The notes beneath the pieces were generated by a model. The model saw only the letters and a program-made list of their open reading frames with translations, was not told where the DNA came from and did no database searches. Positions 6,401-53,400 of a DNA stretch of 64,000 bases are shown piece after piece (positions within the stretch are counted from its first letter, which is position 1; the number at the start of each line of letters is the position of its first letter). A program made the translations under genes and the position numbers. The DNA comes from Takakia lepidozioides (lineage: Eukaryota > Plantae > Bryophyta): contig CM060732.1 of assembly GCA_030704615.1 (NCBI GenBank), positions 53,196,001 through 53,260,000 on the forward strand, read 5' to 3'.

Positions 6401-9400
6401 GGCTTTCGGCGAAACAGGGGCTGCGTGGATCATATCTTCACACTCAGCCAGATTATCCAGGGAAGGAAAAATGAAGGGAAACCCACTTATGTCTTTTTCC
6501 TGGATGTCAAAAAGGCCTATGACACTGTGTGGAGAGACGGTCTATAGCTCCGACTCTGGTCTTCCGGGATCAATGGAAAGATGTGGAGAATGGTCCATAA
6601 CTTGTATGCTCACACTAAAAGCTGTGTCACTGTTAACGGACAGAAGTTTAATTTCTTTGACATAGACCAAGGTATAGCTCAAGGATGTACCCTCTCCCCT
6701 CTGCTCTTCAATGTTTTCATCAATCAACTACTGGAGGATGTGGAAAGTGAGGGATTTGGGTTAAGGGTGGGTAATGCCACCATACCAGCCCTTATGTTTG
6801 CGGATGACTTCGCAGGCAAAGGGGAGACTCCTTCCAACCTCCAGGGGCTGATAGATTGCGCGAAGAGATACTTTGATCTTTGGGTGCTACAGGCCAATGT
6901 CAGTAAATGCGCAGTGGTGGCATTCAACGACCGGGGGGAAGGAGGAGGCGATCTCAAGTGGCAGTGGGGAAGCCAAGAGATCCCTGTTCTCCCCTCCTAC
7001 ACCTACCTTGGCGTTGAGTTTTCCTCCAACTGTAATTGGGAAGCACATATTCAAAGAGTGGTTCAATCTGGCAAACGCAAAGCGCTGGGTCTCCCTAAAT
7101 TTTTCCACTGCAGAGGGATCAACTCTGAAGTCAAAAGAACCATGCTTTGCCGCATTATCAGGCCGGCCTTGGAGTATGCATCTGCTGTATGGGTTGATAC
7201 CTCCAACCAGGCTAAGTCTCTTGAATCCATCCAGGTCGGGGTGCTCAAGGAGTGCATGTCAGCATGCTCCAAAACAGCTAATGTGGCTGTTCGGGGTGGG
7301 TTTGGCATTCCTCCCTTAAGCTCCCAACGCGATGAATTCAAAATCAGATGGTGGGGTCAGCTGCAACGTATGGCTAATACCAGATATCCTAAGTTAATCG
7401 ACTCTATATCTTGGAAGCAGGACCACCCTGTCAAACAGGCTAAATCCTGGCGGAAAAGGGTAGAAGAGATTTTCAAGGATCTGAATCTTAGTCCACTAGC
7501 CATGACCCTGCTGGATAAATCTGGCTTAGAAGCTGAAGTTTCCGAAGCCATGTCTATTGCCAGGAAATTGTCTGAAGAAAATGAAGTTAGGCAGAAAACT
7601 TCCCTGAACCTGTTTCCAGTCTGTGACATGGGTGAGGACGTCATGGATGACCTCAAGGGTCTACCCACCCTCGGCACTAGACTGAAATTCAAACTCAGGG
7701 CGGGTAGCCTACCTTTGAACAACAAACAGTCGCAGAGAGGAAGGGGGATGTAAGTCCCCGTTGTGTGGGCAACCTGAAGACAATATTCACTTCCTGATTC
7801 ATTGTCCTGGGTAGTCTCACCAACGGGACACCCTCTTCAATTCCATCAAGGAAATTGTGCCTGTACCTCTGTGTAACAACTTTGAAAATCTTGAGGCTGA
7901 GCCAAAAGCCCAGGCCCTTTTGGGGTCTAGCTATTGGGCAAATCACACACATCAGATTGATGCTTGTGTGAAGGGATTTCTGGAGGATATCTGGAAGTCT
8001 CGGATCAACTGTTTATTCCAAGGCAAATCATACTACCGGCGTCAGCCCCTGACAAAGGTAGTTTCTGTCCCTTTATGTTCCGCTCAAACTGGGCGCGGGT
8101 CAATGGCCACAAGGCTACGGCAAACAATGTCTTATGAGTACATTCTCTCTCTCTCTCGATAAGTCTTACTGCCGGCGTCAGCCCCCTGACAAAGGTAGGT
8201 TCTGTCCCTTTGTGTTCCGCTCAAACTGGGTGCGGGGTCAATGGCCACAAGGCCACGGCAAACAACGTTTTATGAGTACGTTCTCTCTCTCTCTCTCGCC
8301 TTTCTCTTGATGGTGGATAAGTTTTTGGTAACACCACTCAAGTATCACCTAATCCCATTAGTCCATTAGCCTTCAGAACGGGATAATGGGAAACGGGTTA
8401 GGATTCTCCCTGGGTCCTAACCTAAAGCGTCAGAACCCTATATAGTTCGAAAACCTGGCTGCTCTTCTCATTTGGAAGATGAGCTGAAGAATTCTCAAAT
8501 GTTGGTTGCACTGAAGGAAGATGTTAGGATCTGATCACCAGTGGCAGCCTTGCCATTTGCTGATCCTTTTCACAAGAATACACCTACGGTATCTCTTCGT
8601 ACCTACCTTGAAATAGGTAGATGGCTGCATGAAGTCACTTTGACACTATGACCTCCTAGGGGCACAAGTATGAGCTTTTTGACTCCACAGAACTGCTTTA
8701 AAGAACCAATCCCCTAATTGCTGAGCTATGGCTTGTCTCATAGTGCAATTTTGCCTTCCACATGGACTCTAATAGAAGACTTCCGCTCAAACTGGCGGGG
8801 TCAATGGCCACAAGGCTACGGGAAACAACGTCTTATGAGTACATTCTAATAGAAGACTTATAGCATCAACCTTAGAAGGCTTCTAATCTACTTATGGAAA
8901 CTAAGAAGGACCTTATGATCAAAGCCCGCATAATCACAAACCTGAGTTTTGCATGGAAATAAGTGTTAAATTTGAAGGAGCAGGATCATGTCCAGATGTA
9001 TGATGTCGTCAAACAAAACAGGACTAGATCCAAATGATCCAGGACGGGACAAGTCTTGACATGACTAAATCATACTCTCTCTACCTAAGTAAGTCCCACT
9101 ACCAGAGTGAGCCCCTCACAAAGGTAGTATCTGTTCCCTCTGTTTCCATACAAACTGTGCACAAGGTCTATGGCCATAAGGCTACAGCAAATGACGTCTT
9201 ATAAGTACGTTCTCTCTCCCACTCTATCTCTCTCTCTCTATCTCTCTCTCTCATCCCCTCACAAGCCCAGGCCCTCCTGAGGCCTAGTTTTTGGGCAAAT
9301 CACACACAGCAGATTGATGCTTGTGTGAAGGGATTTCTAGAGGATATCTGGAAAACCCGGATTAATTCTTTATATGGAGGTAAGTCTTACTACCAACGTC

Positions 9401-12400: not shown

Positions 12401-15400
12401 CTCATGTGATAGGTGATTTCTATCATCTATCCAGTGAGTGTGCTCTGTAGCAAAACTTACACAAACAGCTTAGAAATCCATGAAAAGTGAAGGCCCTCAC
12501 CTGCGCCCGTCCCAAAAACCACCACATCCAACGGAATGCGTGTTAGTGAGGATGCGCGAGGTGAGTAGCAGGTCTTCATGCTTGCTATCACTGTCCAACA
12601 TGCATTTCTAAGCAAGTGAAAGATTGCAAGAGTAATAGTAAAAGTGTGATATTGCACAGAACCTTGAAAGTTTGAGGCAGACCAGCTGCGACGCAGCACG
12701 TATTAATTCACGTAACAAGAAGTACTTGCAAAGCACAGGTAAGGGCCAAGTGTAACTTCCTGTTCATGTCAACAGTTGAGCCAAAGCTTCCCTATAACTG
12801 CATAGGAAAGCTCGACCAGCATAATGAAGGCTAGGCTGCGCTAAAATCTTGCTAGCCGCAGCCTTGTTGAAAACTCTTGAAGGCAGAGCTCGGTGAGCTG
12901 TGTGCCCCGACACTGTCGTAGTTTCAGGTAGCAGCTTAAATTGCAGGGTTAGGGTTCTGAAACCCTAAACTTAAACCAGCACATGGGCAATAAATCCCAC
13001 AATGCCCTAGGTCAGGGAATGAATTTTGCAGAAAGTGTCTACTTGTATCACTTTATCCCACCTGGAATATTCTACCCAAGATTAGAGAGAAAGAGAGAGA
13101 GAGAGAGAGACACCTCAGTTGAAATGGATACCACAAGAAAGCTACCTCAGGTACATTGGAGCCCGGGAAGGCACGTCTTGCAATAGTGGGCATGGCCCCA
13201 GAGAAGAAGTACTCAAGCGTTTGCCAGTACGCCTCCAAGCTCTCCTTGGATGTTATGGTGAACTCATGCCTCGCTCTTGGGGTTAAGTCAAATGCATCCA
13301 AACTAAGAGAAGAGAGGGGCTGTGGTGCCGGTTCTTCAATGTAGGGTTGACTTTCCATGGCATAGGTGAGAGAAGCCTCAGGGGCAGACCGAGATGTTCT
13401 CTTCAGTTCTTCGTTTCGGTGTCCAAGTGTGCCACCCCCCATCACTAGGCGAATCAGCTTCATTGCAAAGAATAGGTGAGTCAGCATCAGCACACAAAAA
13501 ATTCACCCCCACAATATTCACCTTCCAGCATATATCCAGAGTAGCCTGAACTCAAGCTTACAACAAATGAGAATGTATGAGAAATCTCAGAGTAGCTTCA
13601 GACAAACAAAATCATCAGGCTATAAAATCACTGGACTACAAGGCTGCCTCTCGTCAGTAACGTCATTAGGGTTGACTATTGTTGACCACTGAACGAGAAG
13701 CTCTCACTACCTTAAGCCTCCGGAGCACATCAATGAGCCAAGATAGGCGGCTACTGCCATTGCTCCCGGTGAGGGCTGAACATTCCTCTTCTGAAAGGTC
13801 ACATAAGCGGAGTGCCTGCCGGCAATATGACTCCAAGTTCTCTATCTTTTTGGTCGACCCCACCACTTGCAGAAACAGCTCCAAAGGCATCGCCTGTATG
13901 CAGTAAGTATGGATCTTAGACTGCAATAATGGCATCTTTCCCGTCACACAACTTCCAGAGAGCAACAGTAGTGACAAAAGTGCATGACAGGAGAACTCAC
14001 CACAATTCAACTGAGTTTACCAGAATCTGTCCATATCAAAGGCATATCTATGTGAGAGCCTAGTACAGTGTGTTAAAAGTGGACACAGACAAAAAAAACG
14101 AGGCAGAAGAAACAAGAAAAAGGAAGGAAACAAAAAGGACATTGTCCCATAACTTCGAGAGTGAAACAAAGAGTACAAGACAAATCAACTGTATCTTGTA
14201 CAACAGTGACCAGCTGTTATAATATAACTCCCCACTGACTTCACCAGTTTCTGACAGAGGGTGCAAACATACCAAGTTCCTGTGTCAACACTGAAGAATC
14301 AGCCACAACAAATTCAAACCATAAAATAAACCACAGGTTTGAAGATATAAAATGTACTCAGAAGACGTTGTTTGCCCTAGCCTTGTGGCCATTTATCCTG
14401 CGCCCAGTTTGAGCGGAACACAAAAGGACAGAAACTACCTTTGTCAGGGGCTGACGCCGGTAGTATGACTTAGCTTGAAACAGGCAATTGATCCGGGTTT
14501 TTCAGATATCGTCTAGAAGTCCCTTCACACAAACATCAATCTGATGTGTGTGATTTGCCCAACAGATTTGAAGATACAGAGAAAGAGAGAGATAATGTAC
14601 TCAGTAGCATTGTTTTCCATAGCCTTATGGCTGTAGGGAGAGAGTGGAGACCTGAGGAACACAAATCAAAGGTGTATATAGGTGTGTCACAAGCCAATAC
14701 CTTTATTGCTGTCGCTAAACCAAAGACCTTGAAACTGCTTGCCTCCACAGCTGCATGTCCCCTACTTTCAACAGCCCTAGGCAACTCATGATCACTGGCA
14801 TCTGAATCGCCACTGACGTAAGACCAAAGAAAGTAGTGAAGCATCCGAACTCGGACCATCTTTGCAGGGATGAACCCGTTCGCTTGCAGGGTCCGCCCTT
14901 TCTCTGCCTCAGTTTCAATTGCCGATGGACTGCCTCTCTTCACCATCCGTGAAGAGGGCATTCGCTTCACTCCTGTTAATACTGGTACAGAGTCTGTGGC
15001 TGTCTTCACTTTTGACAAACCTTGACCCCGACAATTCATGTCATATTTACGGATGCGATCATGGATTTCGGTTAGTAACTCTGGTTCAATCTCCAGAGAG
15101 GGGAGGAGGACGACCTCGCTGGTTCGGCTGCGTCCACAGTTGGTCAGCCCTGGCATATGAAGCAGAATGCACTTGCATCGGCCCTCACGCTGCAGCTTCT
15201 GCAGAACTCGTGTCAGTGTCTTGCGGTCCATCATTGTGCCCTTCCGCTCTTTCTCTGAGTCCTCAAGCCACCTGTGGAGCTCCACCCGTGGAACAAACTT
15301 TTCCTCCTGGCTCCATCCAACGAAGTCATTGCTCAATCTTTCTAAGAACTGTTTTGAACCAGCAAAATCTGCGGTGACTAGGAAAGACATAAATATTGAG

Positions 15401-21575: not shown

Positions 21576-23401
21576 GATGCACACAGGCACAAGTTTCTCC
21601 TATGAATCTGATACAGGGACTAGACAAGCTTTCCCGCATCTCCCAAGCAGCTCACGGTCGCCCCCGTCTCGCTGGAATCACAACAAGAAAGTTGAGAAAA
21701 CGTCTCATCAGAGTGGTTTCCTTTCGTCCAACTCGGATGGCGCTGCTTTTGTAATACCTGAGGATGAGGGCTTTTGGATGAATTCCCGTCCTGGATGATG
21801 AATGGATGATTCTTTCTCCCTTGGCACAGGGCTAGTGCTGGGCTCAAATCTTCACGTGCCCGAGCGGGAGGTTACATTCGAGCCAAGAGTGAAAATGAAC
21901 GGGGTGAGAGCTTTTTCTGGGGCGGCATCTTGGTTAGGCGGCCGGCCTCATATTTATATCCGTTTGAATTATATAACTCTATTAGGATACATCTAGACCG
22001 TCCACTTTACACGATGTCCGGTTCGATCTTGTCCTCTTCAAAACAAAAGCTCATTAATAAGGTTTTCAGGCAGAAAATTTACGTGGACAAAAGCTTGGTT
22101 ATAAGTAGGATGGGAGAGGATGAATCGATAGCTCAGGCTGCTAGGAGTGGAGGTAGAATGGTGAGGTTAAAGTGGAATGTTCGGTTAGGGTCAACACAAG
22201 GAACAATGTCTGAGCAGCTAAAAATATCGAGGGACTACGTTTCCTATGGGATCTGTGAAAGACGGGATGCTCAATGCATTTTGGACATGATGAACATAGT
22301 AAAGGAGTACAAATCTTGAGGCAGTTCGGGGAGGAGAGCGATTGCAGAATTGTGAAGATTGCAGTGCAATGGGAGGAATTTTGAAAATTTGATGATGGAG
22401 CATGATCGTCGACAACCGAGTCGGATTCGGAAGCACGCAGCATTTCTTGTTATCTGCAAGTGTTTGTAGAACCTCGAATCCAAGCCAGTAACATTGTTCC
22501 GAGCACACTCGCTTCAAAACAAAATATTAGCCAGTCCGAGGCATTTGATCAAGCGATCCGCATAGAGGAGATCCAGCACGCTTCGGCTGCATAAAACTAT
22601 TTGTAAGATTTGATTAGCAGTTGACGCATTTATTTCACTTTTCGTCCACCGGCCACAAATCCACAATGGTTTTAAAGCGGATTACAAGAGCAAGTACTAC
22701 GGTGGTCTCCAAGCGGATCACAAGAGCAAGTATGTACCTTCGAACTGGAGATGTGATTCTCTTTGTATACCTGGTTTCCGTTCACCCCTCCTTACCCCTC
22801 GTTTGTCTATACAAGGTCTAGACATTCACCGCGACTTGTCTGCTGTCGATCCGTCTCTGTCTTTTTGATGAACAGATTTTGAGGATGCATGAACTTCAAC
22901 CTTTTTCCTCGGTAATCTTTCAGCTCTCTCTTACTTCTCAGTACAGGTTCCAAACGTCACGTGTACATACAGTGAAGGTTATGCATGGCAACGTCACACT
23001 ATCTGTATACTACCGTCTCACTAGTGCAATCATCGCACGCTGTCAAAATCACGTGAAGTCGCCTGTAAATCAGTGGAACCGAAAATTTTGCAGGTCTGAA
23101 CATCCCTGACTGGCATAAAGGCCTTCAAATGACGGATGTGCGTGTTGCCAATGGTAGTGTGCACCCGAACTACTTTCTTTGTTTCATGAGGGCGTGTTTT
23201 GCCTCGAATGCTCAGGAATTTGGTGGACAAATATGTCTGGTTCGTTTTAATGAACATCGTTCAACATGGAACCGTGAAAAAATCTGTCCAGACTAATGTC
23301 AAAGTTGCCTGTCGTTGGAACCTGAGATACAATAACCTTAATGATCTACCTCCATCCAGGCGTGGCAGTGCAGGTTGCTGATAAGCATAGATGTGCTGGT
23401 G

Positions 23402-24616
23402 ATGAATGCAGGACCATGCTGTTCATTACCTGATCATCTGGTAGATATGATATTGGCGAAATTGCCTATCCCCGAGCTTTTCCGCATGCGAGCTGTATGC
23501 AAGAGATGGAACCGCCTCACCCGTTTGCCCAGTTTCCTTGAACTCTATGCGCAGCTACCCCGTGAACATCTCTACTATGTGTATTGCAGATCAAAGGTAG
23601 ATCAGAAGCTCACGAGAGAGGGAAATGGTCCGATGAGGCAGTTGTTTGACGATTTCCGTGGGATACGCGAGTTTTTGGTTCTGTGTCCCTCTACGAACAA
23701 GTGGTACAACATGCCCCTTGATTTCCTACCATTCAAAGTTTTCTACCCAGTTTCCACATCAGCAGGGCTGTTACTTGTTCTCGTCTACAAGGAAAATGGA
23801 GTGATTACTTTAGCAGTGTGCAATCCCCTAACTAAATGTTGGGCCGAGCTACCTCCTTGGAATGATAAACGGAGCACTATTTTGCCAGAGTTTACTGCTC
23901 TTGTCGTGGACAAGATAGAGCATTCGTACATGGTCATTCTCATAGATGGTAAGGCTGATCTTGTAACGCAAGTCTACAACTCATTCACAAAGGCCTGGAA
24001 GAAAACTGACACGTTATGTGCTAGAAGACATCTCCCTTGGTCTGTAATTCAGGTGGTCGAGTCAAATGGAGTCATGTGCTGCCTTGCTAGCGCTGGCACA
24101 CAGATCATGACTTATGATCTTGAGAGAAACATATGGAAGAAGTACTCTTGGCAAGTACCGAAACAACTTCCAAACGGAGAGGTTACGCCAGCTGTGGAGC
24201 GAGAGCCTCTGGGATTGGTGCAAATTGGCGGCCGTCTCTTATTTATCACAGCAATAAGTTGGACGAATGTGCTCGAGATTTGGGAGCTTGATCCAATGTC
24301 AAACTTCTCATGCATCTCCATGGACCAAATTACCTGTGCAGCATCCCCAGACACTCTTCCCCTGGCTAATTTTGTTGCCACAGGTGATTATGAGCTTCTA
24401 AGAGTTGCCCCTCTATACACTGTGGAAGATAGCGAAGCACTTTGCTTTGGGGAAGTTGGATGTGAGGATCCATGGGTCTATGATCTATCAAAAAGGTCAT
24501 GGGTTTCCATGTCCCTTGCACCTGACGCTAAGCAACTGAACACTATGGATCACCATATTCTTGACATCTACTCAACCCAACTAACCATGGAAATGAGACT
24601 AGATATGCCGGTGTAA
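23402..24616 (+). CDS. F-box protein with a kelch-like/FBA-type C-terminal domain; intronless CDS
   Basis: F-box LPDHLVDMILAKLPIPELFRMRAVCKRWN, followed by LAVCNPLTKCWAELPP, TQVYNSFTKAW and YDLERNIW motifs. Confidence 0.9.
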   Translation: MNAGPCCSLPDHLVDMILAKLPIPELFRMRAVCKRWNRLTRLPSFLELYAQLPREHLYYVYCRSKVDQKLTREGNGPMRQLFDDFRGIREFLVLCPSTNKWYNMPLDFLPFKVFYPVSTSAGLLLVLVYKENGVITLAVCNPLTKCWAELPPWNDKRSTILPEFTALVVDKIEHSYMVILIDGKADLVTQVYNSFTKAWKKTDTLCARRHLPWSVIQVVESNGVMCCLASAGTQIMTYDLERNIWKKYSWQVPKQLPNGEVTPAVEREPLGLVQIGGRLLFITAISWTNVLEIWELDPMSNFSCISMDQITCAASPDTLPLANFVATGDYELLRVAPLYTVEDSEALCFGEVGCEDPWVYDLSKRSWVSMSLAPDAKQLNTMDHHILDIYSTQLTMEMRLDMPV

Positions 24617-25354: not shown

Positions 25355-25764
25355 TTAGTTCCACGGCATTTAGAAAGTGGTGAAGACAGTTGGCATCCTG
25401 TGCAACAGTTACAGCCCAACAATCTTTGAGATGAATGTGGTGGGGGGGTGGCACCCACAGCACCATCCAAATGCTCTTGGAGACAAACAAATGTCCCAGA
25501 AGGTATGCTGATAGGCTCAGAAAACCACATTCTCCCTGAGGTTGTAAGGAGAAATACTTTGTGCTCCACCTCCACATCAAGCAATACATGTGTGAGGTAG
25601 GTGGATCCTCAATTTGAGAATGCAATTTATCATCCACATGGAATGCCCTGGTGGTCCACCTCAGAGCCGCAGTGCTCTTGCTCCTTTGTCCTGCATCATC
25701 TCTCTCACCTTGGGTGTATCATCCCACCTGTAGTCGAACAGATGTTTGATAGCAGTGCCATGGA
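25355..25764 (-). pseudogene. Decayed E/E+/DYW remnant of PPR-A
   Basis: Frameshifted pieces RWDDTPKVREMMQDKG, HVDDKLHSQIE, LDVEVEHK and VAQDANCLHHFLN correspond to RWDDKAKVRKMMEDQG, VVDDRSHPQIE, HDLEEEHK and VVRDAYRFHHFQD of the intact paralog. Confidence 0.8.
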
Positions 25765-28700
25765 TCAAACTATGAGGTATTTTGCCACACGTTCTGCTAC
25801 TTTCACATTGCCATGAGTTCTGCATGCACCAAGCAAGGCCCTCCACAAAGCAGCACTTGGTTTAATTGGCATCCTGTTAATGAAGTTCTCTACCTCATTC
25901 CATCGCCCTGCACGACCAAGAAGGCCCACCATGCAGCCAAAATGCTCGGCTGTGGGAGTGAGGCCATGATCTCGATACATGGAATTAAAATAGTGACAAC
26001 CTTCATCCACTAGACCCATATGGTTACACGCAGAAAGAATGCCTGTAAAAGTGATACTGTCTGGCTTGAACCCATCCTGTTGCATTTGTTCCAGTAGTTG
26101 AAGGGCCTTCCTACCATACCCATGCTGAGCATATCCTGCGATCAGGGCGTTCCAGGAGACCACGTTTTGGTGCACCATATTGACAAACACACAACACGCA
26201 TCTTTCATGCTTCCACACTTGGCATACATGTCGACAAGAGTAGTCTCCAGAGTGCTATCTAGCACGAGTCCAACTTTGATGATGTCGGCATGGACCCCTC
26301 TGCCCTTCTCCAGGGCTACCATGCTGGCACAAGCCTTGAGAACAGAAATGAACGTCACCTTGTTGGGCAAAAACCCTTCCCGTACCATTTGCTCATAGAT
26401 CTCGAGAGCCTCCATACCACAACCATGTTGAGCATATCCTGCAATCATTGCACTCCATGAGACCACATCTCGTTCACCCATACTGTTAAACACTGGGTGC
26501 GCATCCTCCATTCTCCCACATTTTGCATACATGTCAACAAGGGCAGTCTCCAGAATAATATCCGGCAGAATTCCGGCTTTTACGATATCAGCATGGACCT
26601 CTTTGCCCACTTTGTGGGCTGCCAGGATGGCACAAGCCTTGAGAACACAGATAAACGTGACCTTGTCGGGTATCACGCCTCCTCGTATCATTTGCTCATA
26701 TATCTTCAAAGCTTCCATACCATACCCATGCTTCCCATATCCTGCCATCATTATTGTCCACGTAAACACATCTCGTTCAGGCATTTTGTCAAATACTATG
26801 CGAGCATCCACCATGCTTCCACACTTAACATACATGTCGACAAGGGTGGTGAGTAGAAAGATATTTGGCTTGAAACCACTTAGGATAATGTGGGTGTGCA
26901 CCTGCTTTCCCATTTCATGGTTTGCAATATTTTTGCATTCCTGCAGGAGACAAACATACGTTTTGGAGTCTGCTGGAATGCCTTGTGTATACAAAATGTG
27001 CAGTGCCAATTTCAGTTGTCCTGCCTTGCATAGTGCCCTCACATCTCCACAATAGGCAGAGGAGTTCTTGATGACTCCATCACCAAATTGTGATTGGCCT
27101 TGCATAATGGCAACTAGTGCTGCTCTCCCCCAAGGAGGGTTTGACCAACCCTTAACCCAATGGGCCCCATTGGTCCACTTCTGTCTGCAGTCTGGAGCAC
27201 TTCGACTTTTCTGTGAAGACCACCGGTGTGCAGGTGAGCAGCCATATTTCTATCAAAGCCCCACATATCACCAGAGCTATAAGGCCGCTTGAATCATAGG
27301 GAATAACCTTGAACAATCACCTTTCAGTAGGAGTGCCATGTGTTTGCAACGAAGAAAAAAACTGTACTTCATTTCAACTGGACAATCCTATCCAGAAAAC
27401 ATCATCACGCCAGTTAAGCACAAGCCTTCTATAAAAACTATTTCAAGCCTTAAATGAAGATAGCCTCACCTTACTCAAAGTGTTGTCCCACCACTGTGAA
27501 GGATCTGAGTAGAACTCCTGCCAAACTTGTGCTTTGCAGTTTTCGTCAGCTGAATGCAAGAAATATGAGCACTTTCCAACTCCCTGGTCTCTGTTAAGGA
27601 ACCGTAGTGCTAAAACACATCTTCAGCAACTCTATTGAGGAATGCTAGTGTTCCATCTCTTTCTCTCTCTATTTGATTCTTGGGGAGGTTTGCAAAGAAG
27701 AGGCTTAATTAGTATGTTCATAATATAATTTGACATCCTTATTAGATATGACATCCCATCCATGACAAATAATCCTGTATGTTAGGAGTGCACACTCGTA
27801 CTAATTTGTGATGTGTGTCTTTCAAAGTCCTGGTAGTGCTTCGAGTTTCTTGAATGCTAAACTAACCACATTCTTAGAGCCTTGTCTTGATCCATAGCTC
27901 CAATATGGTGAGTAAATAATCCCGACCCACCCTCCCTCTTCTTGGTTAGATTTTTGTGGTTTACAAATCTACTTTTCTTAGAATTTTTTTCGCTAGTAAG
28001 TCAGGAAAATTTAAGCAACTCGTACATAGTTTAGTATATGTGCCCTAATACTGCCAGACTGAGAACTGAAAAACTGTAAGGGTCGGTGATGGTGCCTGAA
28101 AAAGCTACGAATGTCCTTCTATGTGAGATCATTTTCAGTTTGATCACAAGCTGTCTAATCTCTCTCTCAAAGGGTCTATGGCCACAAGGCTACAGCAAAC
28201 GTCTTATATGAGCACATTCTCTCTCCACCCAAACTTGGTGTGGGGTCTAGGTCACAAAAATACGGCAAACGTCTTCCGAATACATTCTCTCTACCTTCTT
28301 CCCCCTGCGGTAGTAGGTCAGAGGGATGAGATGAATATATCTGTCCACATCATATGCTTTCCACCACCTAGTTGCCATAGTTCTCGAGTCTGGGGTGAGC
28401 AGAAAGGTAGAGTAAGGACAACCTGAATTCCTTGATTCCACAAAGCTCATTTTGCTCACAACTACCTGTCTCCTGCTTGACAACAGCCCACACGTCAGAT
28501 ACTTCCCACTGGTCTCCAACACCCAGTACTTGCTAATATCTACTACACTGTCCCCACAACCACCCAACCAGAAAAGTGATCAGGACAGTACCCAACTACC
28601 CCTCCCTTCCATTCGAAGTGGTTCTGGCATTCACTCCATGAAATCAAATGTTGGTCCACACAGAATAGCCCTAAGAGGAGCAGGAATGCACCCAATTCAG

Positions 28701-29026
28701 GGGAAGAAGGAAAAGCAGTAACATGTTCTGCCTACCTGTCTGAAAGAGAGACTCCCCATAAAAGCTGCTGAGAGTAGGTAGCATGATATCCAAAGCTCTT
28801 CCTCCTCTAAACTCCTGGATATATGAAGCCCGCTCCTGCACAACTTTTGGTTTAAGATACCCATGTGAGGTTGAAGGACAAAGAAAACGATACTGGTCTT
28901 CGCACCAATGTCGTTTTTGCTACTGCAGCTGTCCTCAACCAGAAATCCTATGACAGAAATTCTGTGCCCTTTCTGCATACGGTGCCCTGCATTCTCAGCC
29001 AGAGCATCCCACATCGCCAATGTGAG
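25765..29026 (-). CDS. Chimeric OSB(OB-fold + PDF motif)-PLS-PPR gene (PPR-A); E domain truncated, possibly a pseudogene
   Basis: Exons ~28736-29026 (LTLAMWDALAENAGHRMQKGHRISVIGFL), 28423-28465 (VVVSKMSFVESRNS), 27470-27549 (QVWQEFYSDPSQWWDNTLSK) and 25765-27210 (KSRSAPDCRQKWTNGAHWVKGWSNPPWG, then PLS triplets). The junctions between these exons are GT-AG and in frame. The acceptor of the OB exon looks damaged. Confidence 0.8.
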
Positions 29027-31457
29027 TGCAGAAGTATGAAGTATGAACATATGAACCCAAGATCATTTCCTGAGAGGCTAAATGTACGCCATCCGTATTG
29101 TTGTTCGACATTCATCTATCTGCAAATTCTCTTCTCCCTCCTCTCTCTGCACACGTGTGCGAGTTCATGTCACTCCCGATGTCATGTTTTGTGAACAACC
29201 TTCAACTTGGCAATCAATCTAAGCTTATGAAGCAAGACGTTTGTTTTGTTTTGTTTTGTTTTGTTTTGTTTTTGTCACGTTGAGATGTCCCAAACCGCGG
29301 GCCCAGCATGGGTGCTTGGTAGGGTTGGAAAGCCCTCGACGAGGAGGGGTGCATGGGCTTAGTCTCACGATTTTTGGACCTGCGGTGTGGGAGATGTGGA
29401 ATTCCAAGTACTTTTGGTCGTGAAAAATAGCAAAAATGGCATTCCTGGGACAATGGTTGGAGCCTCGAGGGGAAAGATATCAAGGGAAAGGTCTCCGGTT
29501 CAAATCTGGTCATAGGCTCTGTGGAAAAAAACTTACTTAGATGACATTGGACACTTGGGGCCAACAGCAAAGGCCACACCGACTTGGTCTCATGATTTTT
29601 GGACTTGCGGTGTGGGAGATGTGGAATTTCAAGTACTTTTGATCCTTGGAAATTCACGAAAAATAGCAAAGTGGGCTTATGGGACGAAGGTTGGAGCCTC
29701 AACAAGATCCGGAGAGAAATCAAGGAAAAATTCATCCGGTTCAAATGTGGTGTGGAAAGAAAATGCATTTAGACTTAGATGACATAGGAGAAGCTTAGAT
29801 GCATATGGGAGGCGCCCTTGGATACATATTGCACTTGGGCTTAGATGACAGCGGACACTTGGGCCTCTACATGGGAGATGCACTTGGAGATATGAATAGA
29901 ACATTGCACTTGGGATTGGGGAAAAATAGCAAAGTGGGCATTCCTAGGAGAATGGTTGGAGCCTTGACGGGAGAGACAACAAGGGAGAGGTCTCCGGTTC
30001 AAATCTGGTCATAGGCTATGTGGAAAAAAAATGATTAGATATGGCTAAATTATTAGACTTAGATGAGAGTGGACACTTGGGCCAACGGCACAGGCTACCC
30101 CAGAGGTCGCACTTGGGCCTCACTTAAGAGACGCACTAGGATATATATGAGATTGGCACTTGGGCTTGGATGACACTGGGCATTTGGGCCAACGGCACAA
30201 GCTACCCTAGAGGTCGCATTTGAGCCTTGTCGTAGGAGACACACTTGAATATATAGGGGATAGCACTTGGAGATATCAAGGGAAAGGTCTCCGGTTCAAA
30301 TCTGGTCATAGGCTCTATGAAAAAAAAATGATTGGGTATGGCTTGCTTCATATATTGATGCACTTGACTTAGATCACACTGGACACTGGGGCCAACGTCA
30401 CAAGCTACCCTAGTCAATACATGAAGCGAGACGTTTGTTTTCTTTGTTTTGTTTTGTAGCGTCGTTGAGATCTCCCAAACCGCGTCCCCAGCCCCGGTGC
30501 TTGGTGCCGTTGGAAAGCCCTCGAGGAGGAGGGGTGCACCGGCTTGGTCTCATGATTTTCGGACAAGCAGTGAGGGAGATGTGGAATTCCAAGTACTTTT
30601 GGTTGTTGAAAATTCACAAAAATATAGCAAAAATGGCAAAGTGGGCATTCCTGGGACAATGGTTGGAGCCTCTACGGAAGAGATGTCAAGGGAAAGGTCT
30701 CCGGTTCAAATCTGGTTGTAGGTTCTGAAATGATTAGATATGGCTTGCTTCATATATTGATGCACTTGGACTTGGATGACATTGGACACTTGGGCCAACG
30801 GCAAAGGCTACCCTAGAGGTTGCATTTGGGCCTCGACATAGGAAACGCACTTTGATACATAGGGTATTGCACTTGGACTTAGACGACACTGGACACTTGG
30901 ACCAACGGCACATGCTACCCTAGTCAATATTTGAAGCGAGACGTTTGTTTTGTTTTGTTTTGTTTTGTTACGTTGAGATGTCTCAAACCGCGAGTCCCCA
31001 GCCCTGGTGCTTGGTCCCGTTGGAAAGCCCTCCGACGAGGAGGGGTGTATGGGCTTGGTCTCAGGATTTTTGGACGTGCAGTGGGGAGATGTGGAATTTC
31101 AAGTACTTTTGATCGCTAGAAATTCACAAAAAATAGCAAAAATGGCAAAGTGGGCATTCATGGGACAATGGTTGGAGCCTCGACGGAGAGATATCAAGGG
31201 ATAGGTCTCCGGTTCAAATCCGGTCGTAGGCTTTGTGGAAAAAAACCTATTTGGATGACATTGGACACTTGGGCCGATGGCAAAGGCTACCCTAGAGGTT
31301 GCATTTGGGCCTCGACATAGGAGACGGACTTTGAGGCACTTGGACTTAGATGACACTGGACACTTGGGCCAACGGCACAAGCTACCCTAGAAAAAAAAAA
31401 ATGATTAGATATGGGATTGCACTTGGACTTAGATGACACTAGACACTTGGGCTTGTA

Positions 31458-33330
31458 CATGGGAGCAGCGTAGCTACGGCGTGAGCCCAGCCCCGTGAGC
31501 TTGGGAACTGAGCTCACGGTTTAGCCGCAAAGCGCGAGCTCAGCTCACGCTTTACGAAGCGTGAGCGTGACATTGATGCGCGAGGAATAGGCCCTATAGG
31601 CGAGAAAGAGGGCCTATCAATAGCGTGGAATAATATGGCTACCATGTAACATGGCTGTCATGGCTGCAAAAAAAGAGGGATAGAAGCATATGGCAAACGT
31701 CAACGGTACAATGATAACCTTTATTTGAATTCATATAAAGAACCTTGCAATGAATTGCAGGCGCAATTGCCCGGTGTGGCACATACTGAAATGTATGTGT
31801 GTCGTACTCGTACAGACATGTCGTGAAAAGCTGGAAGACCAGGGAGGCAAGTTGACATTATCCAAAACTGCTCAAAGAGAAGCAGCTGAAGCATGACGTG
31901 AGGTGTCCCACTGCAGAAGAGTATGAACTTCAGCGTAACCTAATGAGGCTTGATAAATGAATTGGTCTCTCTTGCCGTCGCAGTACATCCTCACAAGATA
32001 TAACGAATATTCCTTCGTACCGGAAGGCAGTAGCCCTTCTGGGTTAAGTGACACCATAAGTTACGTTTGCTTCGGCAACGCGTCCACCTTTTTTTTTTAA
32101 TCCAATATTGATGCTTGCAGGGGACCCACTTCCCTCTCTTCCACAGAGCGCCCTCACGCATGGTTACAAAATCGGGACAAGTACACGCAGGAAGATTGCC
32201 TACTGTAACATGATATTCTTTAATATGAACAACAGAACCGTCAGCCACCAGCGTGTAAATTCTCCCATACCCCGGGGCCGGGACTTCCATAATACGAGTC
32301 ACTTGAGCCTGCATAATTCTGGCTGACTCCATCTTGCAGTTGTGATCTGCACCCAAAGGGATATGGCGCACTGGTTTCCCATCTCGGATTGTTGGGTGGG
32401 AGTCGGCACCGGGTGGAGGAATTGGAGGAATAGAAGGCACATTAATACCCAGGTTGCATGAAGGCACCACCGGAGACCATGGATGATGGAACCCAACCTC
32501 CTCCAGCATGCTAATCTCTGTTGATGACAGCAGATCCCTCAGTGCACCTGTTAAGTGCCCTCGCCATCTTTGCCTAAACCCTAAATCCTGAACCGCAAAT
32601 CCTAATCCTAAATCATAAACCCTAAACTTCATCTAGCAAAAGTGATGAACGTCAACAATTATCATAACTACCCAAATGCCGAAACAGAGCAGAAGTGATG
32701 ATCGTCGACGATCATCACGACATCTACCCACTGCCAAAACAGAGCAGAAGTGATGATTGTTGACGATCATCACTTCTGTTCGGTTTTTTTTTTTTTTCAA
32801 AATACGGGAAAAAAAAAACATCATTGACGATCATCACTTCTGTTCTGTTTTGGCATTGGATAGATGTCATGATGATCTTCGACGATCATCACTTCTGCTC
32901 TGTCTTGACATTTGGGTAGTTGTGATGATCGTCGACGATCATCACTTCTGCTCTGTTTTAGCATTTGGGTAGTTCTGCTAGATGGAGTTTAGGGTTATGA
33001 TTCAGGATTAGGGTTTGCGATTTAGGATTTAGGGTTTAGGGTTAGAGAAGGTGAGAGGGATTGCAGGGTGGGAGGGGATGGAACACACAGTTCGATGCCA
33101 TGGTAATTGCGAAGTTTGCCTCGCGCCGTCTCTCCATCTATCCCTGTCATGTCCGCCATCACCCCTCCATCCCTGCTTATTCACCTCCTTGTCTGTATCG
33201 ATTTGTTTTCTTCTACGATATTATATACATTAATTCCGCGAAAATAAAATCCTCCCACGAAATAAGTCCAGTATGCGTGCAATAATTGTTTGCCGTACCG
33301 TGAGCCTGGCTGGGCTCACAGGCTCCCATG
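31458..33330 (-). mobile_element. Nested TIR DNA transposon with a SWIM zinc-finger ORF remnant
   Basis: Inverted termini catgggagc..gtgagcccagcc..gctcacggt and accgtgagcctggctgggctcacaggctcccatg. ORF 31991-32632 contains CTCPDF...CKH (SWIM). Confidence 0.65.
32572..33043. repeat. Foldback (long inverted repeat) element with telomere-like arms
   Basis: The left arm (CCCTAAA-like) is the reverse complement of the right arm (TTTAGGG-like). Inside are inverted gatcgtcgacgatcatcac repeats around a poly-T/poly-A centre. Confidence 0.85.
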
Positions 33331-34589
33331 CTCAGAATATAGCATTCCCCACATGGGAGATGCACTTGGATACATGAATAAAAGATTGCACTTGGCTTAG
33401 ATTTCAATTCTTCACACATGGGCCAACTGCATAGGCTACACTAGAGGTCGCATTTGGGCCTCGACATAAGAGACCCACGGGATACATAAGAAATTGCACT
33501 TGGGCTTACATTTCAATTCTTCACACATAGGCCTTGACATATGAGATGTTACTTGAATACATAGGGGATTGCACTTGGACTTAGATTTCAATTCTTAACA
33601 CATGGGCCAATGGCACAGGCTACCCTAGGCCTAGATCTCCCAAACAAGAGGGTCTCTAGATACATAGGGGATTGCACTTGGACTGAGATGACACTGGACC
33701 GTTGGGTGAACGGCACAGGCTACCTTAGAGGTCGCACTTGGGCCTCGACATAGGAGATGCAGTGGGATACATAGAAGATCTTACACTTGGGCTTAGATGA
33801 CACTGGACACTTGGGCCTACAGCACAAGCTACCTAGAGGTCGTGCTTGGGCCTCGACATAGGAGACGTAGTGGGATGCATAGAAGATCTTAGACTTGGGC
33901 TTAGATGACAGTGGACACTTGGGCCAACAACACAGACTGCCCTAGAGGTCGCATTTGGACCTCGACATAGGAGACGCACTTGGATACATAGGGAATTGCA
34001 CTTGGACTTAGATGACACTGGACACTTGGGCCAACGGCACAGGCTACCCTATCAAGATCTATAAAGGAAGCCAGTTTGTTTTGTTTTGTTTTGTTTTGTT
34101 TTGTCACGTTAAGATGTCCCAAACCGCAAGGCCCCAACCCTGGTGCTTGGTACCGTTGGAAAGCGATCGACGAGGAGGGGTGCATGGGCTTGGTCTCATG
34201 ATTTTTGGACCTGCGGTGTGGGAGATGTGGAATTCCAAGTACTTTTGGTCGCTGGAAATTCACAAAAAATAGCAAAAATGGCAAAGTATGCATTCCTGGG
34301 ACAATGGTTGGAGCCTCGTCAGGAGAGATATCAAGGGAAAGGTCTCCGGTTCAAATCTGGTCGTAGGCTCTGTGGAAAAAAACTTACTTAGATGACATTG
34401 AACACTTGGGCCAACGGCAAAGGCTACCCTAGAGGTTGCATTTGGGCCTCGACATAAGAGACGCACTCTGATACATAGGGGATTGCACTTGGACTTAGAT
34501 GACACTGGACACTTGGGCCAACGGCACAGGCTACCCTAGTCTGTTTCTATAGTGTCCAGACATGAACTTATTGGAAGAGAGCCCCGCTC

Positions 34590-46110: not shown

Positions 46111-48339
46111 TTACCAGTAATCCCCACAGGAACAAACCCCATCTTGGAAGTGGTGGAAGCGGTAGGCATCCCGTACAACAACCATTCGCCCAACGATCTT
46201 TGAGATAACTTTGGTGACAGCGTGGCAGTCACCACAAACTCTAAGGTTCTTGATAACACGGATAGGCATCCCAGGGGATGTGCTGATGAGCCCAAAAGCA
46301 ATAGCAAGCCTCTCACTGTGGTAGCAAAGAGACGATTCCTTGTGCTCCTCCTCCAAATCATGCAATACAAAGGGCGTGTCAGGCACATACCCCCCCACCT
46401 TCATCTGCTCACTCAATCTCTTCAGCTCCATATGGATTTCCTCAATTTGTGGATGTGACCTGTCATCTACAACAAATGTATGTACCAGGTTTTCCACTTC
46501 AATGCAGCTCTGTCCTGGCTCCTTTCTGACTCCTTGGTCCTCCATCATCTTTCTGACCTTCGCTTTATCATCCCACCTGCCAGCTCCAGCATAGACGTTT
46601 GATAGCAGCACATAGGCTGAACTGTTCTTTGGATCACTTTTCAGAATATTATTTGCTGCACGTTCTGCTACTTCCACATTGCCATGAATTCTGCAGGCAC
46701 CAAGCAAGGCTAGCCACACCAAAGCACTTGGTTCCAGTGGCATTTTGTTAACGAGTCCCTCTGCCTCATCTAATTGCCCTGCACGACCAAGAAGGTCTAC
46801 TATACAACCAAAATGCTCCACTGTGGGAGTGAGGCCATAATCTTGACTGATGGAATTAAAATAGTGACACCCTTCATCCACTAGACCGACATGGCTGCAT
46901 GCAGAGAGAACAGACGTAAAATTGATACCATCTGGCTGGAAGCCTTCCTGTTGCATTTCTTCAAATAGTTTAATGGCTTCCCTCCCATACCCGTGCTGAG
47001 CACATCCAGCAATTATGGCACTCCATGATACCACATTTCGTTGTGCCATATTATCAAACACTTGACGTGCATCCTTCATGCTCCCACATTTCGCATACAT
47101 GTCAACAAGAGTATTCTCCAGAGTGATATCTGGCACAATTCCACTCTTGCTGATGTCAGAAAGGACCCTCTTTCCTTTTTCCAGGGCTCCCAGGCTGGCA
47201 CAAGCATTTAGAATGCAAGTGAACGTAACCCTGTTGGGCATCACCCCTTCCCCTTGCATTTGCTTGTAGACCTCAAGAGCCTCCCTACCAAATCCATGCT
47301 CGGCGTAACCTGCAATCATGGCACTCCACGAGACCACATTTCGTTTAGCCATATTGTCAAACACTTGGTGTGCATCCTTCATGCTCCCGCATTTGGCATA
47401 CATGTCCACAAGGGCAGTCTCCAGAATGATATCTGGCTGAATTTTAGCTTTGATGATGTGAGCATGGACTTCTTTGCCCTTTGCAAGGGCTCCTAGGCTG
47501 GCACATGCTTTGACAATACAAGTGAACGTGACTCTGTTGGGCATCATCCCTTCCCGTTGCATTTTCTCATAGATCTCAAAAGCCTCTCTACTACACCCGT
47601 GCTCAGCATATCCTGCAATCATCACACTCCATGAGACTACATTCCGTTTGGACATTTTATCGAACACTTTCCGTGCATCTTTCATGCTTCCGCATTTGGC
47701 ATACATGTCAGCAAGGGCAGACTCCAAAATCATATCTGATGCAACACGCTCTCTGATGAGGTCCGCATGGACTTCTTTGCCCTTGACCAACTCTCCTAGG
47801 CTGGCACACGCGTTGATAACGCAAGTGAATGTGACTCTGTCAGGAGTCAACCCTTCCAATTGCATTTGCTGATAAAGCTGTAAAGCCTCCTTAGCATAGC
47901 CCTGTTTAGCATATCCTGCTATCATTATACTCCACGTAAACATATCTCGTTCAGGCATCTCGTTGAACACTTGGTGTGCATCCACCACACTCCCACACTT
48001 AGCATACATGTTGAGAAGAGTACTGAGCACAAAGATGTTTGGCTTGAATCCAGTCTGGATAATGTGGGCATGCACCTGCTTTCCCTCTGCTAGGGCTCTC
48101 ATTTTAATGCACTCCTGCAAGACACAGACATAAGTATTGGAGTTTGTCTTAGCGCCTTGGTGGTTCAAACTGTATACTGCCTCTTTCAGTCGTTCTGCCT
48201 TACACAGTGTCCTTATCTTCCCACAAGTGCCAGAAGGGACTTTCTTGACTTCATCTCTTGGTCCTGTTTCAAAAGCAGTAGTGATGGTGGAGGTGCTTTT
48301 AGCGTCAACAAACAACTGACCATGATTTAACCCTGCCAT
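46111..48339 (-). CDS. PLS-class PPR protein with E1/E2 and DYW:PG cytidine deaminase domain (organellar C-to-U RNA editing factor; PPR-B)
   Basis: 742-aa ORF with repeated P-L-S triplets, PG box KEPGQSCIEV, HSERLA, CGDCH and terminal CSCGDYW. Confidence 0.96.
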   Translation of the reverse strand: MAGLNHGQLFVDAKSTSTITTAFETGPRDEVKKVPSGTCGKIRTLCKAERLKEAVYSLNHQGAKTNSNTYVCVLQECIKMRALAEGKQVHAHIIQTGFKPNIFVLSTLLNMYAKCGSVVDAHQVFNEMPERDMFTWSIMIAGYAKQGYAKEALQLYQQMQLEGLTPDRVTFTCVINACASLGELVKGKEVHADLIRERVASDMILESALADMYAKCGSMKDARKVFDKMSKRNVVSWSVMIAGYAEHGCSREAFEIYEKMQREGMMPNRVTFTCIVKACASLGALAKGKEVHAHIIKAKIQPDIILETALVDMYAKCGSMKDAHQVFDNMAKRNVVSWSAMIAGYAEHGFGREALEVYKQMQGEGVMPNRVTFTCILNACASLGALEKGKRVLSDISKSGIVPDITLENTLVDMYAKCGSMKDARQVFDNMAQRNVVSWSAIIAGCAQHGYGREAIKLFEEMQQEGFQPDGINFTSVLSACSHVGLVDEGCHYFNSISQDYGLTPTVEHFGCIVDLLGRAGQLDEAEGLVNKMPLEPSALVWLALLGACRIHGNVEVAERAANNILKSDPKNSSAYVLLSNVYAGAGRWDDKAKVRKMMEDQGVRKEPGQSCIEVENLVHTFVVDDRSHPQIEEIHMELKRLSEQMKVGGYVPDTPFVLHDLEEEHKESSLCYHSERLAIAFGLISTSPGMPIRVIKNLRVCGDCHAVTKVISKIVGRMVVVRDAYRFHHFQDGVCSCGDYW

Positions 48340-48539
48340 CCTGCATGAGCCAAGAGTCCTTCAGCTATCAACCCCTGCACACAACTTACATAAAATAAGC
48401 TCTAGACAATTAAAAGAACTATCTCTTCAGGCACACCATGACAACAGTTACCGAACTACTGTAGTTATCTACTTTGGGTATATCTGTTCTGAATGTATCT
48501 GTTTGAGTTGGAACCCTTGAATTATCATCAACACAATAC

Positions 48540-49069
48540 CAGGTGCATTCTCGACTCTGAGCCCCCTGGTATACATGAACACTCTTACCATCAAGAGATC
48601 TGCTCGACCTTGTATCATGGCAACTAGCTCAGCTTTCACCCAAGGAGGGTTTGAGAAATTCTCAATCCAAAGAACCTCCTTTGTGCACTTATATCTGAAA
48701 TCGGGTGATCTTGGACTTCTCTGTGAAAACCGCGTGCAGGCAGCTGAGCAAATAGTGTTAACCACAGGACTGTTTGACCAACAACCAAAGCTCCACAAAC
48801 ACTGCTTCAATTAACAGGCCAGTTTTGAGCAGACCAACCGTAGTTGATTAATCATGGGCTTGGTCAGCCATGAGAACTCCGGGGATGTGTGATTTCCAAG
48901 GACTTTAATTGTCTTGAATCAAGGAAGCTGAAAACCATTGTTCAGCTTACACCATACCAGCTGCACTCAAAAAAAGAGAACCTCACCTTATCAGACCTGT
49001 TGCCGGGCCACCACTGGGAAGGATCTCACATGAATTCCTCCCAGAGCCGTTCTATGCTTGTTGCTTGTC
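48540..49069 (-). pseudogene. Decaying OSB-type PDF-motif exons upstream of PPR-B
   Basis: Exon 48987-49069 reads QATSIERLWEEFM*DPSQWWPGNRSDK. The exon starting at 48720 reads RSPRSPDFRYKCTKEVLWIENFSNPPWVKAEL. Intron position and phase are the same as in PPR-A. Confidence 0.8.
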
Positions 49070-50400: not shown

Positions 50401-53400
50401 ATGGTTTGGCTTCTAAGAGCTGTCCATGCCTCTCTTGGTGCGCTCCCTTCCTCCCTCTCCTTTCTCCCTTCTTGGGGCTTACTCTGGTGGGCTGGAACTC
50501 CCTAAATGCCCCCTGGAAGTTTAGGAATAAGTACCCCACAGGGTCTGTGTCCTAAAGGATATCTCATAAGCAGCCTTCCCAGGGAACTGCAAATTAGATT
50601 GTCATCATCAATTTCTCTCCCTTGTCTTTGTCTTTATGTCATTTGTGTATCTTTTACAATACCTTCTGCACTATGTTCTAGCTGTAAAGAACAATCTGAT
50701 TGCAAGGGTAACTTCCAGGTGTGTTTGCTGGGAATATGCATGGGTTCTGAGGTTGAATTAATCCTTGTCCGTGGTCCCACTAAAGCATATTTATTTAGCA
50801 ATTCCAGTACCAGAGAACTGACTGGCATTTGCACCCTAAGATCTGAGAAGGGGATCAACTGGAATGATTGGTCCTGTTGAGATGATATGTCTTCTTTGGA
50901 TGCTACGCTTCTGGCATGCTACCCCTTCATTTTTCAGGCACTTTCTTGGCAGGATTGTACTCTGTTGAGAAGACTATTGTCATACACTAACGAATTGAGA
51001 TGCACTTGGGTGGCTGCAGTTCCATCAACATACTATTTCACGTTGCCAGGCATCTACACAGTGGGACGAAAAGGTGAAATGTCTTTTCATTATGGTGAAG
51101 AAGTAATCAGGATGAGCAATAGTCAAGCTGTAGAATATCACCTTGCTGGTGGATTTGAACTTTGGTTGATGCATGTTTATCTAGGTCTATGTGTATACTC
51201 TTGTTCTTTCTTTTAGCTTTGTTACTATTACCTTGCGCACACTTATGGCAAAATACACTGGCACGGAAGGTGTGGCAAGCATCTTCAAAAAGAAATGGGT
51301 GTGCAAATAGACCTTTTCCCAATCCTTTTTCCATCAGTGGTATTTGCATAATTGGGGGATTTATGATGATGATGAAAATGTGCGAATGTGCAGATTGCAG
51401 CATCACTATTCTATCTGACAAGTCCATATCTCGTGTACATGCCCACCTTATCATTGAGGCAGCTAGCACACCAAACAGAGATGTGGAGGAGATCGCTCAA
51501 ATACCACGCATGCCACTGAGAGTCAAGGACCTCTCCAAATTTGGAACATATGTCAACAAGGAAACGGTCTCCACACCTGGTTCTGAAGCTATACTTAAAG
51601 AAGGTGACCTGGTAACCTTTGGGAACAACAAGACTACTTTCAGGTTGGTGAGTAACCTTGGGCCTCCTCCCATGTGTTTCGTAACATGTGCAATGCTAGT
51701 GCATCTTTGGCCTCTACTTGACTTTCTGCTCACAACCTTCATGTCATTCCAAGGATAGCAGTAATGTTGGAGGATCTGCAAATTCTGAGGCTTTCTATAC
51801 CACTCCTTTTTTTTGCAGGGTAGAATTTGTTCCCTTGTATCTGTGTATACCTTCCCCAGCTAACCAAAGCAAAAGAGATGAGGCCTTCAAGGCTGTGGCT
51901 GCCATTGGTGAGCAGGACTTGACCTTGAGGCCTGGTGCAAGGACACAGGCAGGGATATTCTAGGGCTTGCATATTATGATGATGTTGTCATACTTGTGTT
52001 TTCCTCACTGTTGATGTGTTTACTCTCCATCTGCATTCATCTGTGCTTGTCTCAAAGGGCTACCCGGAATTCTCATTAGCTTTTCATTTAAAGCTGTTTA
52101 CTGCAATTTGTTATTAGTTTGGCTTTGAAAGCTTATGTGCTTAGATTGGCACAAAGTTGAATGTGACTAGCTAGCCCAGTGCATTTGTTACTGCTATAAT
52201 CATGTGGAACATTGCAGGGGCTTATGCTGTTGAAAAGTGGAAAGAGGATTGCACACATGTGCTGGTTGAGGAAGGTTTTGCTGTAAATGAGGTAGTCACA
52301 GCAGCTGTCACCTCACGCAAGCCTGTGGTCCAGCTAGATTGGCTCCAGGTCCATTCCCTGCCCCCTTTTTCCATAGAGTTCTATGTGCTTGAGCTCTTGA
52401 CAACTCGAGAAGGATATTGCGTGTAGGACTGTGTCATGTTAGTGTATGTTGATCTATGTAAGCAATAATTTGTGATTGCTCCTGTGCACGAGCAGTTCAT
52501 TTCTGTTTGCTAGTTTCATACCCTGGTAGTTGTGAAACAGAGAACCAGCTCCAGAAGGGTGTACCACCAGAGGTATGCACAAAGGGGTAGGCATTAGTCA
52601 ACTGCATGTCCAGGGCATCTCCAGGTGCCTGTGTTGTTAACAGCAAGGAAGTTTGTAGGGTGGAAGCTGCTCATATGTTTACATTGTTCATCACCGAGTT
52701 GACTCTAGACTTCCGTCGATGCTATCTGAGTCTTCCTCTTGGTTGTCAGGCTATTGTTGCCCAAAGCTCCCCAAGCAATGATCTCCCTTCTTTGTCCAGG
52801 TGAGATGCAAACTCCACACCAATGTAGTCTGGTTTTCGCCACACCCCTGTCACGTCGACACCATGGTCTTCCACCACTTAACACTGGTTACGGCTATAGT
52901 ACAAGGAGGGTATCTTACATAAGCAACTTTGCTTGTTGCTTCAGTAAATATAAATTGTGTACGGAGGAAAGGTATTTATGTCATGGATGTGTATAGAGTG
53001 GCTTTGAGTTTGCGGCGTGCCTACTGATCCCTCTAAACTTCTGACAAAGTGTTGGGGTTCTCAGTTTTCTTCCAACTTTGATGTTTCAAGGGAGGGAGTC
53101 TGCCTTCACTCTCAAGCTTGCAGTACCTCAAGCACGGAAAATCCTGCTGCAGGGCTACACATTCTTCATCGGACCTCTACAGCTAGTAAGAAGCCTACAG
53201 CTTATGGTTGTCACAGAGTGTAGAGAGCATTCTTCACGTGGGAAATGACCATGTCATGTTGTTGACCATGATGGCAGTATGAACATGGGGCCAATCTGGT
53301 TCTTCTCATTGAAGCTGGTGGTGGATGCGTGGAATTAATTTCCAGCAAATCCAACAGCCCTCATGCAGGCAGGCACTGCCACATTGCTCTTGATACTGTT

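Follow-up and report, generated by a model that had tools for sequence, protein, structure and literature searches.

The 64-kb stretch of the Takakia lepidozioides genome analysed here (the window) contains two related PPR genes, referred to as PPR-A and PPR-B, which lie 21 kb apart on the same strand. Directly upstream of the PLS-type PPR array of PPR-B is a module in which two small exons with a phase-0 intron between them encode the PDF motif otherwise found in OSB proteins, and PPR-A carries a homologous module. The coordinates of both genes, of their neighbours and of a LINE-like retroelement are collected in Table 1.

Table 1. Features identified in the window, ordered by position.
Feature	Position	Strand	Remarks
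LINE-like retroelement	2976-7753	plus	Several broken ORFs; Exo_endo_phos and RVT_1 domains
GTF3C1-like extended winged-helix exon	14536-15390	minus	Neighbouring gene
F-box/beta-propeller protein	23375-24616	plus	Neighbouring gene
PPR-A E/DYW remnant	25373-25729	minus	Stops, frame changes and deletions (tblastn of PPR-B C-terminus, blastn)
PPR-A PDF exon 2 and PLS array	25765-27210	minus	Continuous exon; PDC in place of PDF; family profile E = 2.1e-8, 25.9 bits
PPR-A intron inside PDF motif	27211-27469	minus	Position as in PPR-B
PPR-A PDF exon 1	27470-27549	minus	Frame open, motif diverged (VWQEFYSDPSQWWDNTLSK); 35.9 bits against family profile
PPR-B ORF	46111-48339	minus	742 aa; PLS-type PPR array, then E1, E2 and DYW deaminase
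PPR-B-specific segment	48256-48606	minus	351 nt; PPR-A has 15 nt here (27096-27082), between ..MQG and ..DGVIKNSSAYCGDVRALCK
PPR-B PDF exon 2 (second half of motif)	48607-48720	minus	Begins after ttcacag|; same frame as PPR ORF
PPR-B intron inside PDF motif	48721-48986	minus	266 nt, GT..AG, phase 0, after K of WW(D)NRxxK
PPR-B PDF exon 1 (first half of motif)	48987-49069	minus	83 nt; phase-1 acceptor cattcag|GA, donor AAG|gtgagg
In-frame TGA in PPR-B PDF exon 1	49026-49028	minus	At the Ser codon of ..EFFSDPSQWW.., conserved in the family
FHA-domain exon	51162-51758	plus	Transcribed away from PPR-B; leaves ~2 kb upstream of PPR-B for a leader exon

The ORF of PPR-B is unbroken over its whole length. 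Pfam models PPR_2 (E = 9.6e-81), PPR (2.6e-78) and PPR_1 (4.6e-63) each matched it in 8-9 stretches, and E_motif (5.7e-21), Eplus_motif (2.4e-6) and DYW_deaminase (2.4e-42) matched its C-terminus. The DYW region is complete, with the PG box PGQSCIE, the HSE of HSERLA, CGDCH and a terminal DYW. With its PLS array, its E1 and E2 motifs and a DYW deaminase that carries both zinc-binding signatures (HxE and CxDCH), PPR-B resembles the known PLS-class PPR-DYW editing factors such as the DYW proteins of mosses (reviewed in PMC9459714). It differs from them in descending from a gene with a PDF module ahead of the array, a module that is broken in PPR-B. No database record encoding the exact ORF was found, and the closest relatives in the database, 40-57% identical, carry PPR or DYW annotations. 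The ATG at 48339 stands in a good context (A at -3, G at +4). The ~40 residues that separate it from the first repeat include several acidic ones, and inspection revealed no obvious organelle-targeting peptide in them.

The PDF module of PPR-B was compared with a family profile built from 17 PDF motifs of database homologs, which has 14 invariant alignment columns and the consensus ..EQLWQEFFSDPSQWWDNRxxKKxPKxPDFKHKxTxEGLWIxxxxNPxWVKxKMAxM.. The two exons were searched one by one. Exon 1, which reads ..IERLWEEFM*DPSQWWPGNRSDK, scored 30.3 bits with the stop entered as X. Exon 2 reads RSPRSPDFRYK..NPPWVKAELVAMIQG, also given as RSPRSPDFRYKCTKEVLWIENFSNPPWVKAELVAMIQG.. from position 48720, and contains the PDF stretch SPDFRYK..LWIENFSNPPWVKAELVAMIQG; it matched the profile at E = 1.2e-14 in hhalign and with 48.3 bits in hmmsearch, and was matched in tblastn by 80 OSB-like representatives. 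Pfam has no model for the PDF motif and gave no match for exon 2. Together the exons show the signature of an OSB-type PDF motif (~50 residues, Pro-Asp-Phe, flanking W/WW/LW/PxW).

The frame through this motif is nonetheless closed by the TGA in exon 1, a codon that the sequence-only reading had already reported; the matching codon of PPR-A is TCA. In addition, a 3-nt insertion in exon 1 changed the WWDNR of the family to WWPGNR, so that a conserved Asp became Pro-Gly. Two of the 14 invariant residues are thus lost from PPR-B (F9M and D17 to Pro-Gly), besides the stop at the conserved Ser, and all of those in the exon 2 half of the motif are retained, P-D-F included. The codon immediately before the TGA is an ATG, and the pair (49026-49031, minus strand) reads as start-stop. 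If exon 1 lies in a 5' leader this would be a minimal start-stop uORF, probably of accidental origin.

The combination of a PDF module with a PPR-DYW protein is not peculiar to this locus. When the database homologs of PPR-B were ranked, 22 of the top 120 had one to three PDF motifs separating the leader from the PLS array. The species represented are Diphasiastrum complanatum (a clubmoss), Ceratodon purpureus (a moss) and Calypogeia fissa (a liverwort), and JGI proteins are included as well. Searching 1.84 billion representatives with the profile returned 1234 proteins at E <= 1e-3, among them additional PDF-PPR proteins of Diphasiastrum and of five Sphagnum species. Relatives such as Ceratodon purpureus KC19_1G285400, two Calypogeia fissa proteins (P0014 and P0037), Sphagnum fallax BDL97_10G099700 and many O6H91_ genes of D. 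complanatum share with PPR-B the order of leader, PDF, short linker, PLS array, E and DYW, the division of the motif between two exons, and the linker into the ..LCxEGRLKEA.. first repeat. They differ from it in having a frame open through the motif and a leader of 20-150 residues, whereas PPR-B has the TGA, the Pro-Gly replacement and a stop-laden spacer of 336 nt, and only short, acidic or otherwise unconvincing candidates for a leader exon were found in the 2 kb upstream. The remaining 98 of the 120 closest homologs, among them all listed seed-plant matches (Ginkgo, Cryptomeria, Taxus, Pinus, Ilex), are without PDF. Loss of the module is therefore evidently tolerated, and relatives among the editing factors commonly lack it.

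The intron inside the motif bears on the age of this architecture. In PPR-B, PPR-A and the Ceratodon, Calypogeia, Diphasiastrum and Sphagnum genes, the motif is interrupted by a phase-0 intron at one and the same site, following the K of WWDNRxxK, and an acceptor ahead of PDF exon 1 is found at a corresponding place too. In an OSB-like gene of an angiosperm, Kingdonia uniflora, every PDF repeat is split by an intron at that site. The shared intron indicates that the PDF module is an old two-exon unit common to OSB and PPR genes. Taken with the spread of lineages, it also indicates that the PDF-PPR-DYW architecture is older than the split between bryophytes and vascular plants, far before the duplication that gave rise to PPR-A and PPR-B (Ks 0.56 over the array). 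The sequence-only reading had argued that the fusion predates this duplication and represents a family rather than an accident, and the homologs support that claim more strongly than it was made. A literature search, with most subscription journals outside its reach, found no published description of the combination, and PDF-PPR-DYW proteins are apparently an undescribed variant of PPR-DYW editing factors.

Also matched by the profile were proteins 300-500 residues long in which a Pfam SSB domain at the N-terminus is followed by PDF repeats at the C-terminus, which is the architecture of OSB proteins (PMC6963530, PMC4166229). In AtOSB1 the PDF motif on its own binds single-stranded DNA (PMC6963530, PMC4166229). 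By analogy, the module in intact family members probably adds a non-specific affinity for single strands beside the sequence-specific PPR array. A keyword search of the PPR review PMC9459714 returned neither OSB nor single-stranded DNA binding. An AlphaFold model of the motif consists of a helix, short strands and a second helix (mean pLDDT 76.5), and Foldseek found no significant match to it in the PDB (best E 3.7). In Kingdonia, the OSB-like gene is annotated as a protein of 1160 residues with 13 PDF repeats and a weak SSB match near the C-terminus; either the PDF array is exceptionally long or the gene model may be a merged one.

PPR-B shares with OSB genes the same motif of ~50 residues and an internal intron of the same position and phase. 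In OSB proteins, however, an OB fold precedes a C-terminal PDF, whereas in PPR-B the motif is N-terminal to the PPR array and interrupted by a stop, and neither tblastn with 138 OSB-like representatives nor piecewise blastp against the region upstream of PPR-A found an OB fold upstream; PPR-B is therefore not an OSB gene. That the PDF exons belong to another transcript, for example the 3' end of an upstream OSB gene, and stand beside PPR-B by chance appears extremely unlikely. The C-terminal position of PDF motifs in OSB proteins would suit such an arrangement, as would a weak OB-fold-like match 1.3 kb upstream of PPR-A exon 1 (28871-29035, minus strand; tblastn E 7e-5), which reads ..AMWDALAENAGHRMQKGHRISVIGFLV.. 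and may be the OB fold that the sequence-only reading tied to PPR-A. The intact PDF-PPR homologs inspected are without an OB fold. Against a separate transcript, upstream of PPR-B there is no such match, PDF exon 2 and the PPR array form one exon in PPR-A and in all but one of the four homolog genes inspected, and the block duplicated between PPR-A and PPR-B starts exactly at the acceptor of PDF exon 1.

Homology between the PDF exons of the two genes, with the same intron position and phase, had been proposed from the sequence alone, and the significance of their similarity had been named as decisive for that proposal. In blastn, exon 1 aligned at E 6.5e-7 (PPR-A 27559-27449) and exon 2 at E 2e-19 (PPR-A 27240-27098), and splice-site sequences and phases are identical. 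Upstream of exon 1 the two regions share nothing by blastn or piecewise blastp. The array of PPR-A has one PLS triplet fewer than that of PPR-B and ends within the region matching the PPR-B E motif (residues 545-587 of PPR-B), beyond which only the remnant listed in Table 1 remains. The loss of DYW from PPR-A and its preservation in PPR-B, where the PDF is broken, were thus correctly recognised in the sequence-only reading. Its statement that PPR-A keeps the PDF holds for the open frame and fails for the motif. Five of the 14 family-invariant residues are lost from PPR-A (L4V, F9Y, R19T, F30C, which turns P-D-F into P-D-C, and L39H), and over both exons PPR-A scored 62 bits against the family profile and PPR-B 79, compared with 100-122 for intact members, which had themselves helped to build the profile. 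A word-indexed protein search with the PPR-A PDF region, which needs exact 5-mers, gave no match to this diverged motif. A comparison of the two genes gave a Ka/Ks of 0.37 in the PPR array and 0.65 in the PDF exons, and the PDF modules of both copies look released from constraint.

A complementary decay of the two paralogs is accordingly seen in that PPR-A lacks DYW and PPR-B has a broken PDF, but not as a clean reciprocal partition, since both PDF modules are eroding and that of PPR-A is the more eroded. We consider it very unlikely that the copies are subfunctionalising, with PPR-A (PDF and PLS, no DYW) and PPR-B (PLS and DYW, no PDF) splitting the ancestral functions, both being kept for that reason and perhaps acting together. 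Flowering plants are known to have DYW-less PLS proteins that recruit a DYW domain in trans, and this precedent counts for such a division, together with the superficially reciprocal losses and an array of PPR-A that evolves no faster than that of PPR-B. However, the PDF of PPR-A has lost even the F of P-D-F and scores below the broken copy, and nothing ties the products of the two genes together. A shared target is not expected, as the arrays differ by a whole PLS triplet and by a Ka of 0.21. A variant in which PPR-A is a PDF-bearing, DYW-less recognition factor and PPR-B a PDF-less deaminase, retained as a split pair with the ATG-TGA of the relic exons acting as a translational leader, seems just as improbable. 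No result points to subfunctionalisation as it was first suggested, and the decay of PPR-A and PPR-B looks like independent histories rather than a division of labour.

The most conspicuous difference between the two genes is the extra segment between PDF exon 2 and the array of PPR-B, which amounts to a net excess of 336 bases (112 codons) over PPR-A. It contains in-frame stops at 48471, 48450, 48429 and 48363, and it includes the start of the PPR-B ORF, from the ATG at 48339 through codon 28. The sequence-only reading placed an apparent 1-nt frameshift after the motif and repaired it by joining a donor at 48540 to an acceptor at 48340. Both parts of this are wrong: from 48720 to the ATG is 381 nt (127 codons), which leaves PDF exon 2 and the PPR ORF in one frame, and the proposed donor is in phase 1 while the acceptor needs phase 2. 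As the sequence stands, PDF motif and PPR array are not encoded as one polypeptide in PPR-B, given the TGA in exon 1 and, unless they are spliced out, the four stops.

The segment represents an insertion, or else an intron peculiar to this lineage. Signs of a transposon origin of the extra bases were looked for: no second copy was found within the window, and the only feature is an inverted repeat at the edges, too short to demonstrate such an origin. This repeat is a perfect one of 8 nt (ATCTCTTG / CAAGAGAT) at 48253-48260 and 48592-48599; its placement is notable and the signal weak. Two candidate GT..AG pairs would remove the stops in frame. The first joins ATG|GTAAGA at 48589 to cag|TTG at 48315, and the second joins AAG|GTCGAG at 48609 to aaacag|GA at 48263, excising almost exactly the non-homologous part. 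Each pair has one weak partner.

These pairs are central to the possibility that PPR-B is an intact PDF-PPR-DYW gene, in which the TGA would be an assembly or sequencing error or a polymorphic allele and the 336 bases an in-frame, lineage-specific third intron. The undamaged second half of the motif and its frame with the PPR ORF are what such a gene would show, and the Ceratodon homolog also has an intron after PDF exon 2, though at a different position from the PPR-B segment. However, about one third of random donor-acceptor pairs would be in frame by chance, the good donor has only weak, purine-rich acceptors and the good acceptor only weak donors. Exon 1 is moreover damaged beyond the TGA, at the invariant Phe that became Met and at the Asp of WWDNR, and the Ka/Ks of the PDF exons is raised. 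Overall, we regard an intact gene as rather unlikely.

The explanation we favour, with a confidence somewhat above even, is that PPR-B is a partly decayed member of the old land-plant PDF-PPR-DYW family which would now act as a PDF-less editing factor, its PDF exons being relics. Members of this family would be organellar C-to-U editing factors with one to three OSB-type PDF modules between a targeting peptide and the PLS-PPR array. In PPR-B the module appears to have been disabled in three ways, by the nonsense codon in place of Ser, by the change of Asp to Pro-Gly and by the stop-laden bases before the array. Translation would start at the ATG at 48339, within the extra segment, and yield a PLS-E1-E2-DYW protein whose array is predicted to recognise the RNA 5' of a target C, with the DYW domain deaminating that base. 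The transcript would either carry the two PDF exons in its 5' leader or not include them at all. With several independent lesions in the PDF region and none in the 2.2 kb of PPR-DYW sequence, the latter is probably still under selection and translated from this ATG. The divergence of the arrays points the same way, as at the Ks and Ka/Ks given above the ORF would not be expected to stay open unless selected.

Some observations sit less easily with relic exons. The well-kept exon 2 fits recent or continuing use, upstream ATGs in PDF exons within the leader would hinder translation of the main ORF, and neither an obvious targeting peptide nor, in the 2 kb upstream, a convincing first exon was found. 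The last of these would also be seen if PPR-B were a young pseudogene, silenced by the loss of its upstream exons and targeting peptide, with an ORF still open for lack of time. The N-terminus of the ORF derives from inserted, non-homologous sequence and the neighbouring PPR-A is demonstrably decaying, both of which would agree with silencing. The concentration of lesions in the PDF region speaks against this, the catalytic motifs are intact, and changes at array columns conserved in the outgroups are no commoner in PPR-B than in PPR-A (32 vs 39, not significant). A pseudogene thus seems unlikely, if slightly less so than an intact fusion, and a PDF-less editing factor remains our preferred reading of PPR-B.

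As a decaying copy, the locus is not very informative by itself. Its interest lies in the natural experiment it offers on PPR-DYW editors that bear the single-strand-binding PDF module of OSB proteins, with PPR-B suggesting that loss of the module need not damage the editing part. The split-exon structure in mosses, liverworts and a clubmoss, together with the T. lepidozioides genome, dates the architecture, and the motif intron common to OSB genes points to a transfer of the two-exon module between DNA-maintenance and RNA-editing families. If intact members need the module for editing, pairs like PPR-A and PPR-B would offer ready-made PDF-minus and DYW-minus comparisons.

Upstream of PPR-A, the window also contains a complex repeat array (29200-31500 and 33300-34550) with units of ~107 nt and 350-650 nt at 78-97% identity. 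An ORF of 184 aa in this region (29214-29768) was rejected as an exon or gene, being the translated repeat array. A further unit of ~55 nt at 28172-28225 recurs in the window at 179, 1750, 6345, 8097, 8235, 8798, 9165 and 9455.
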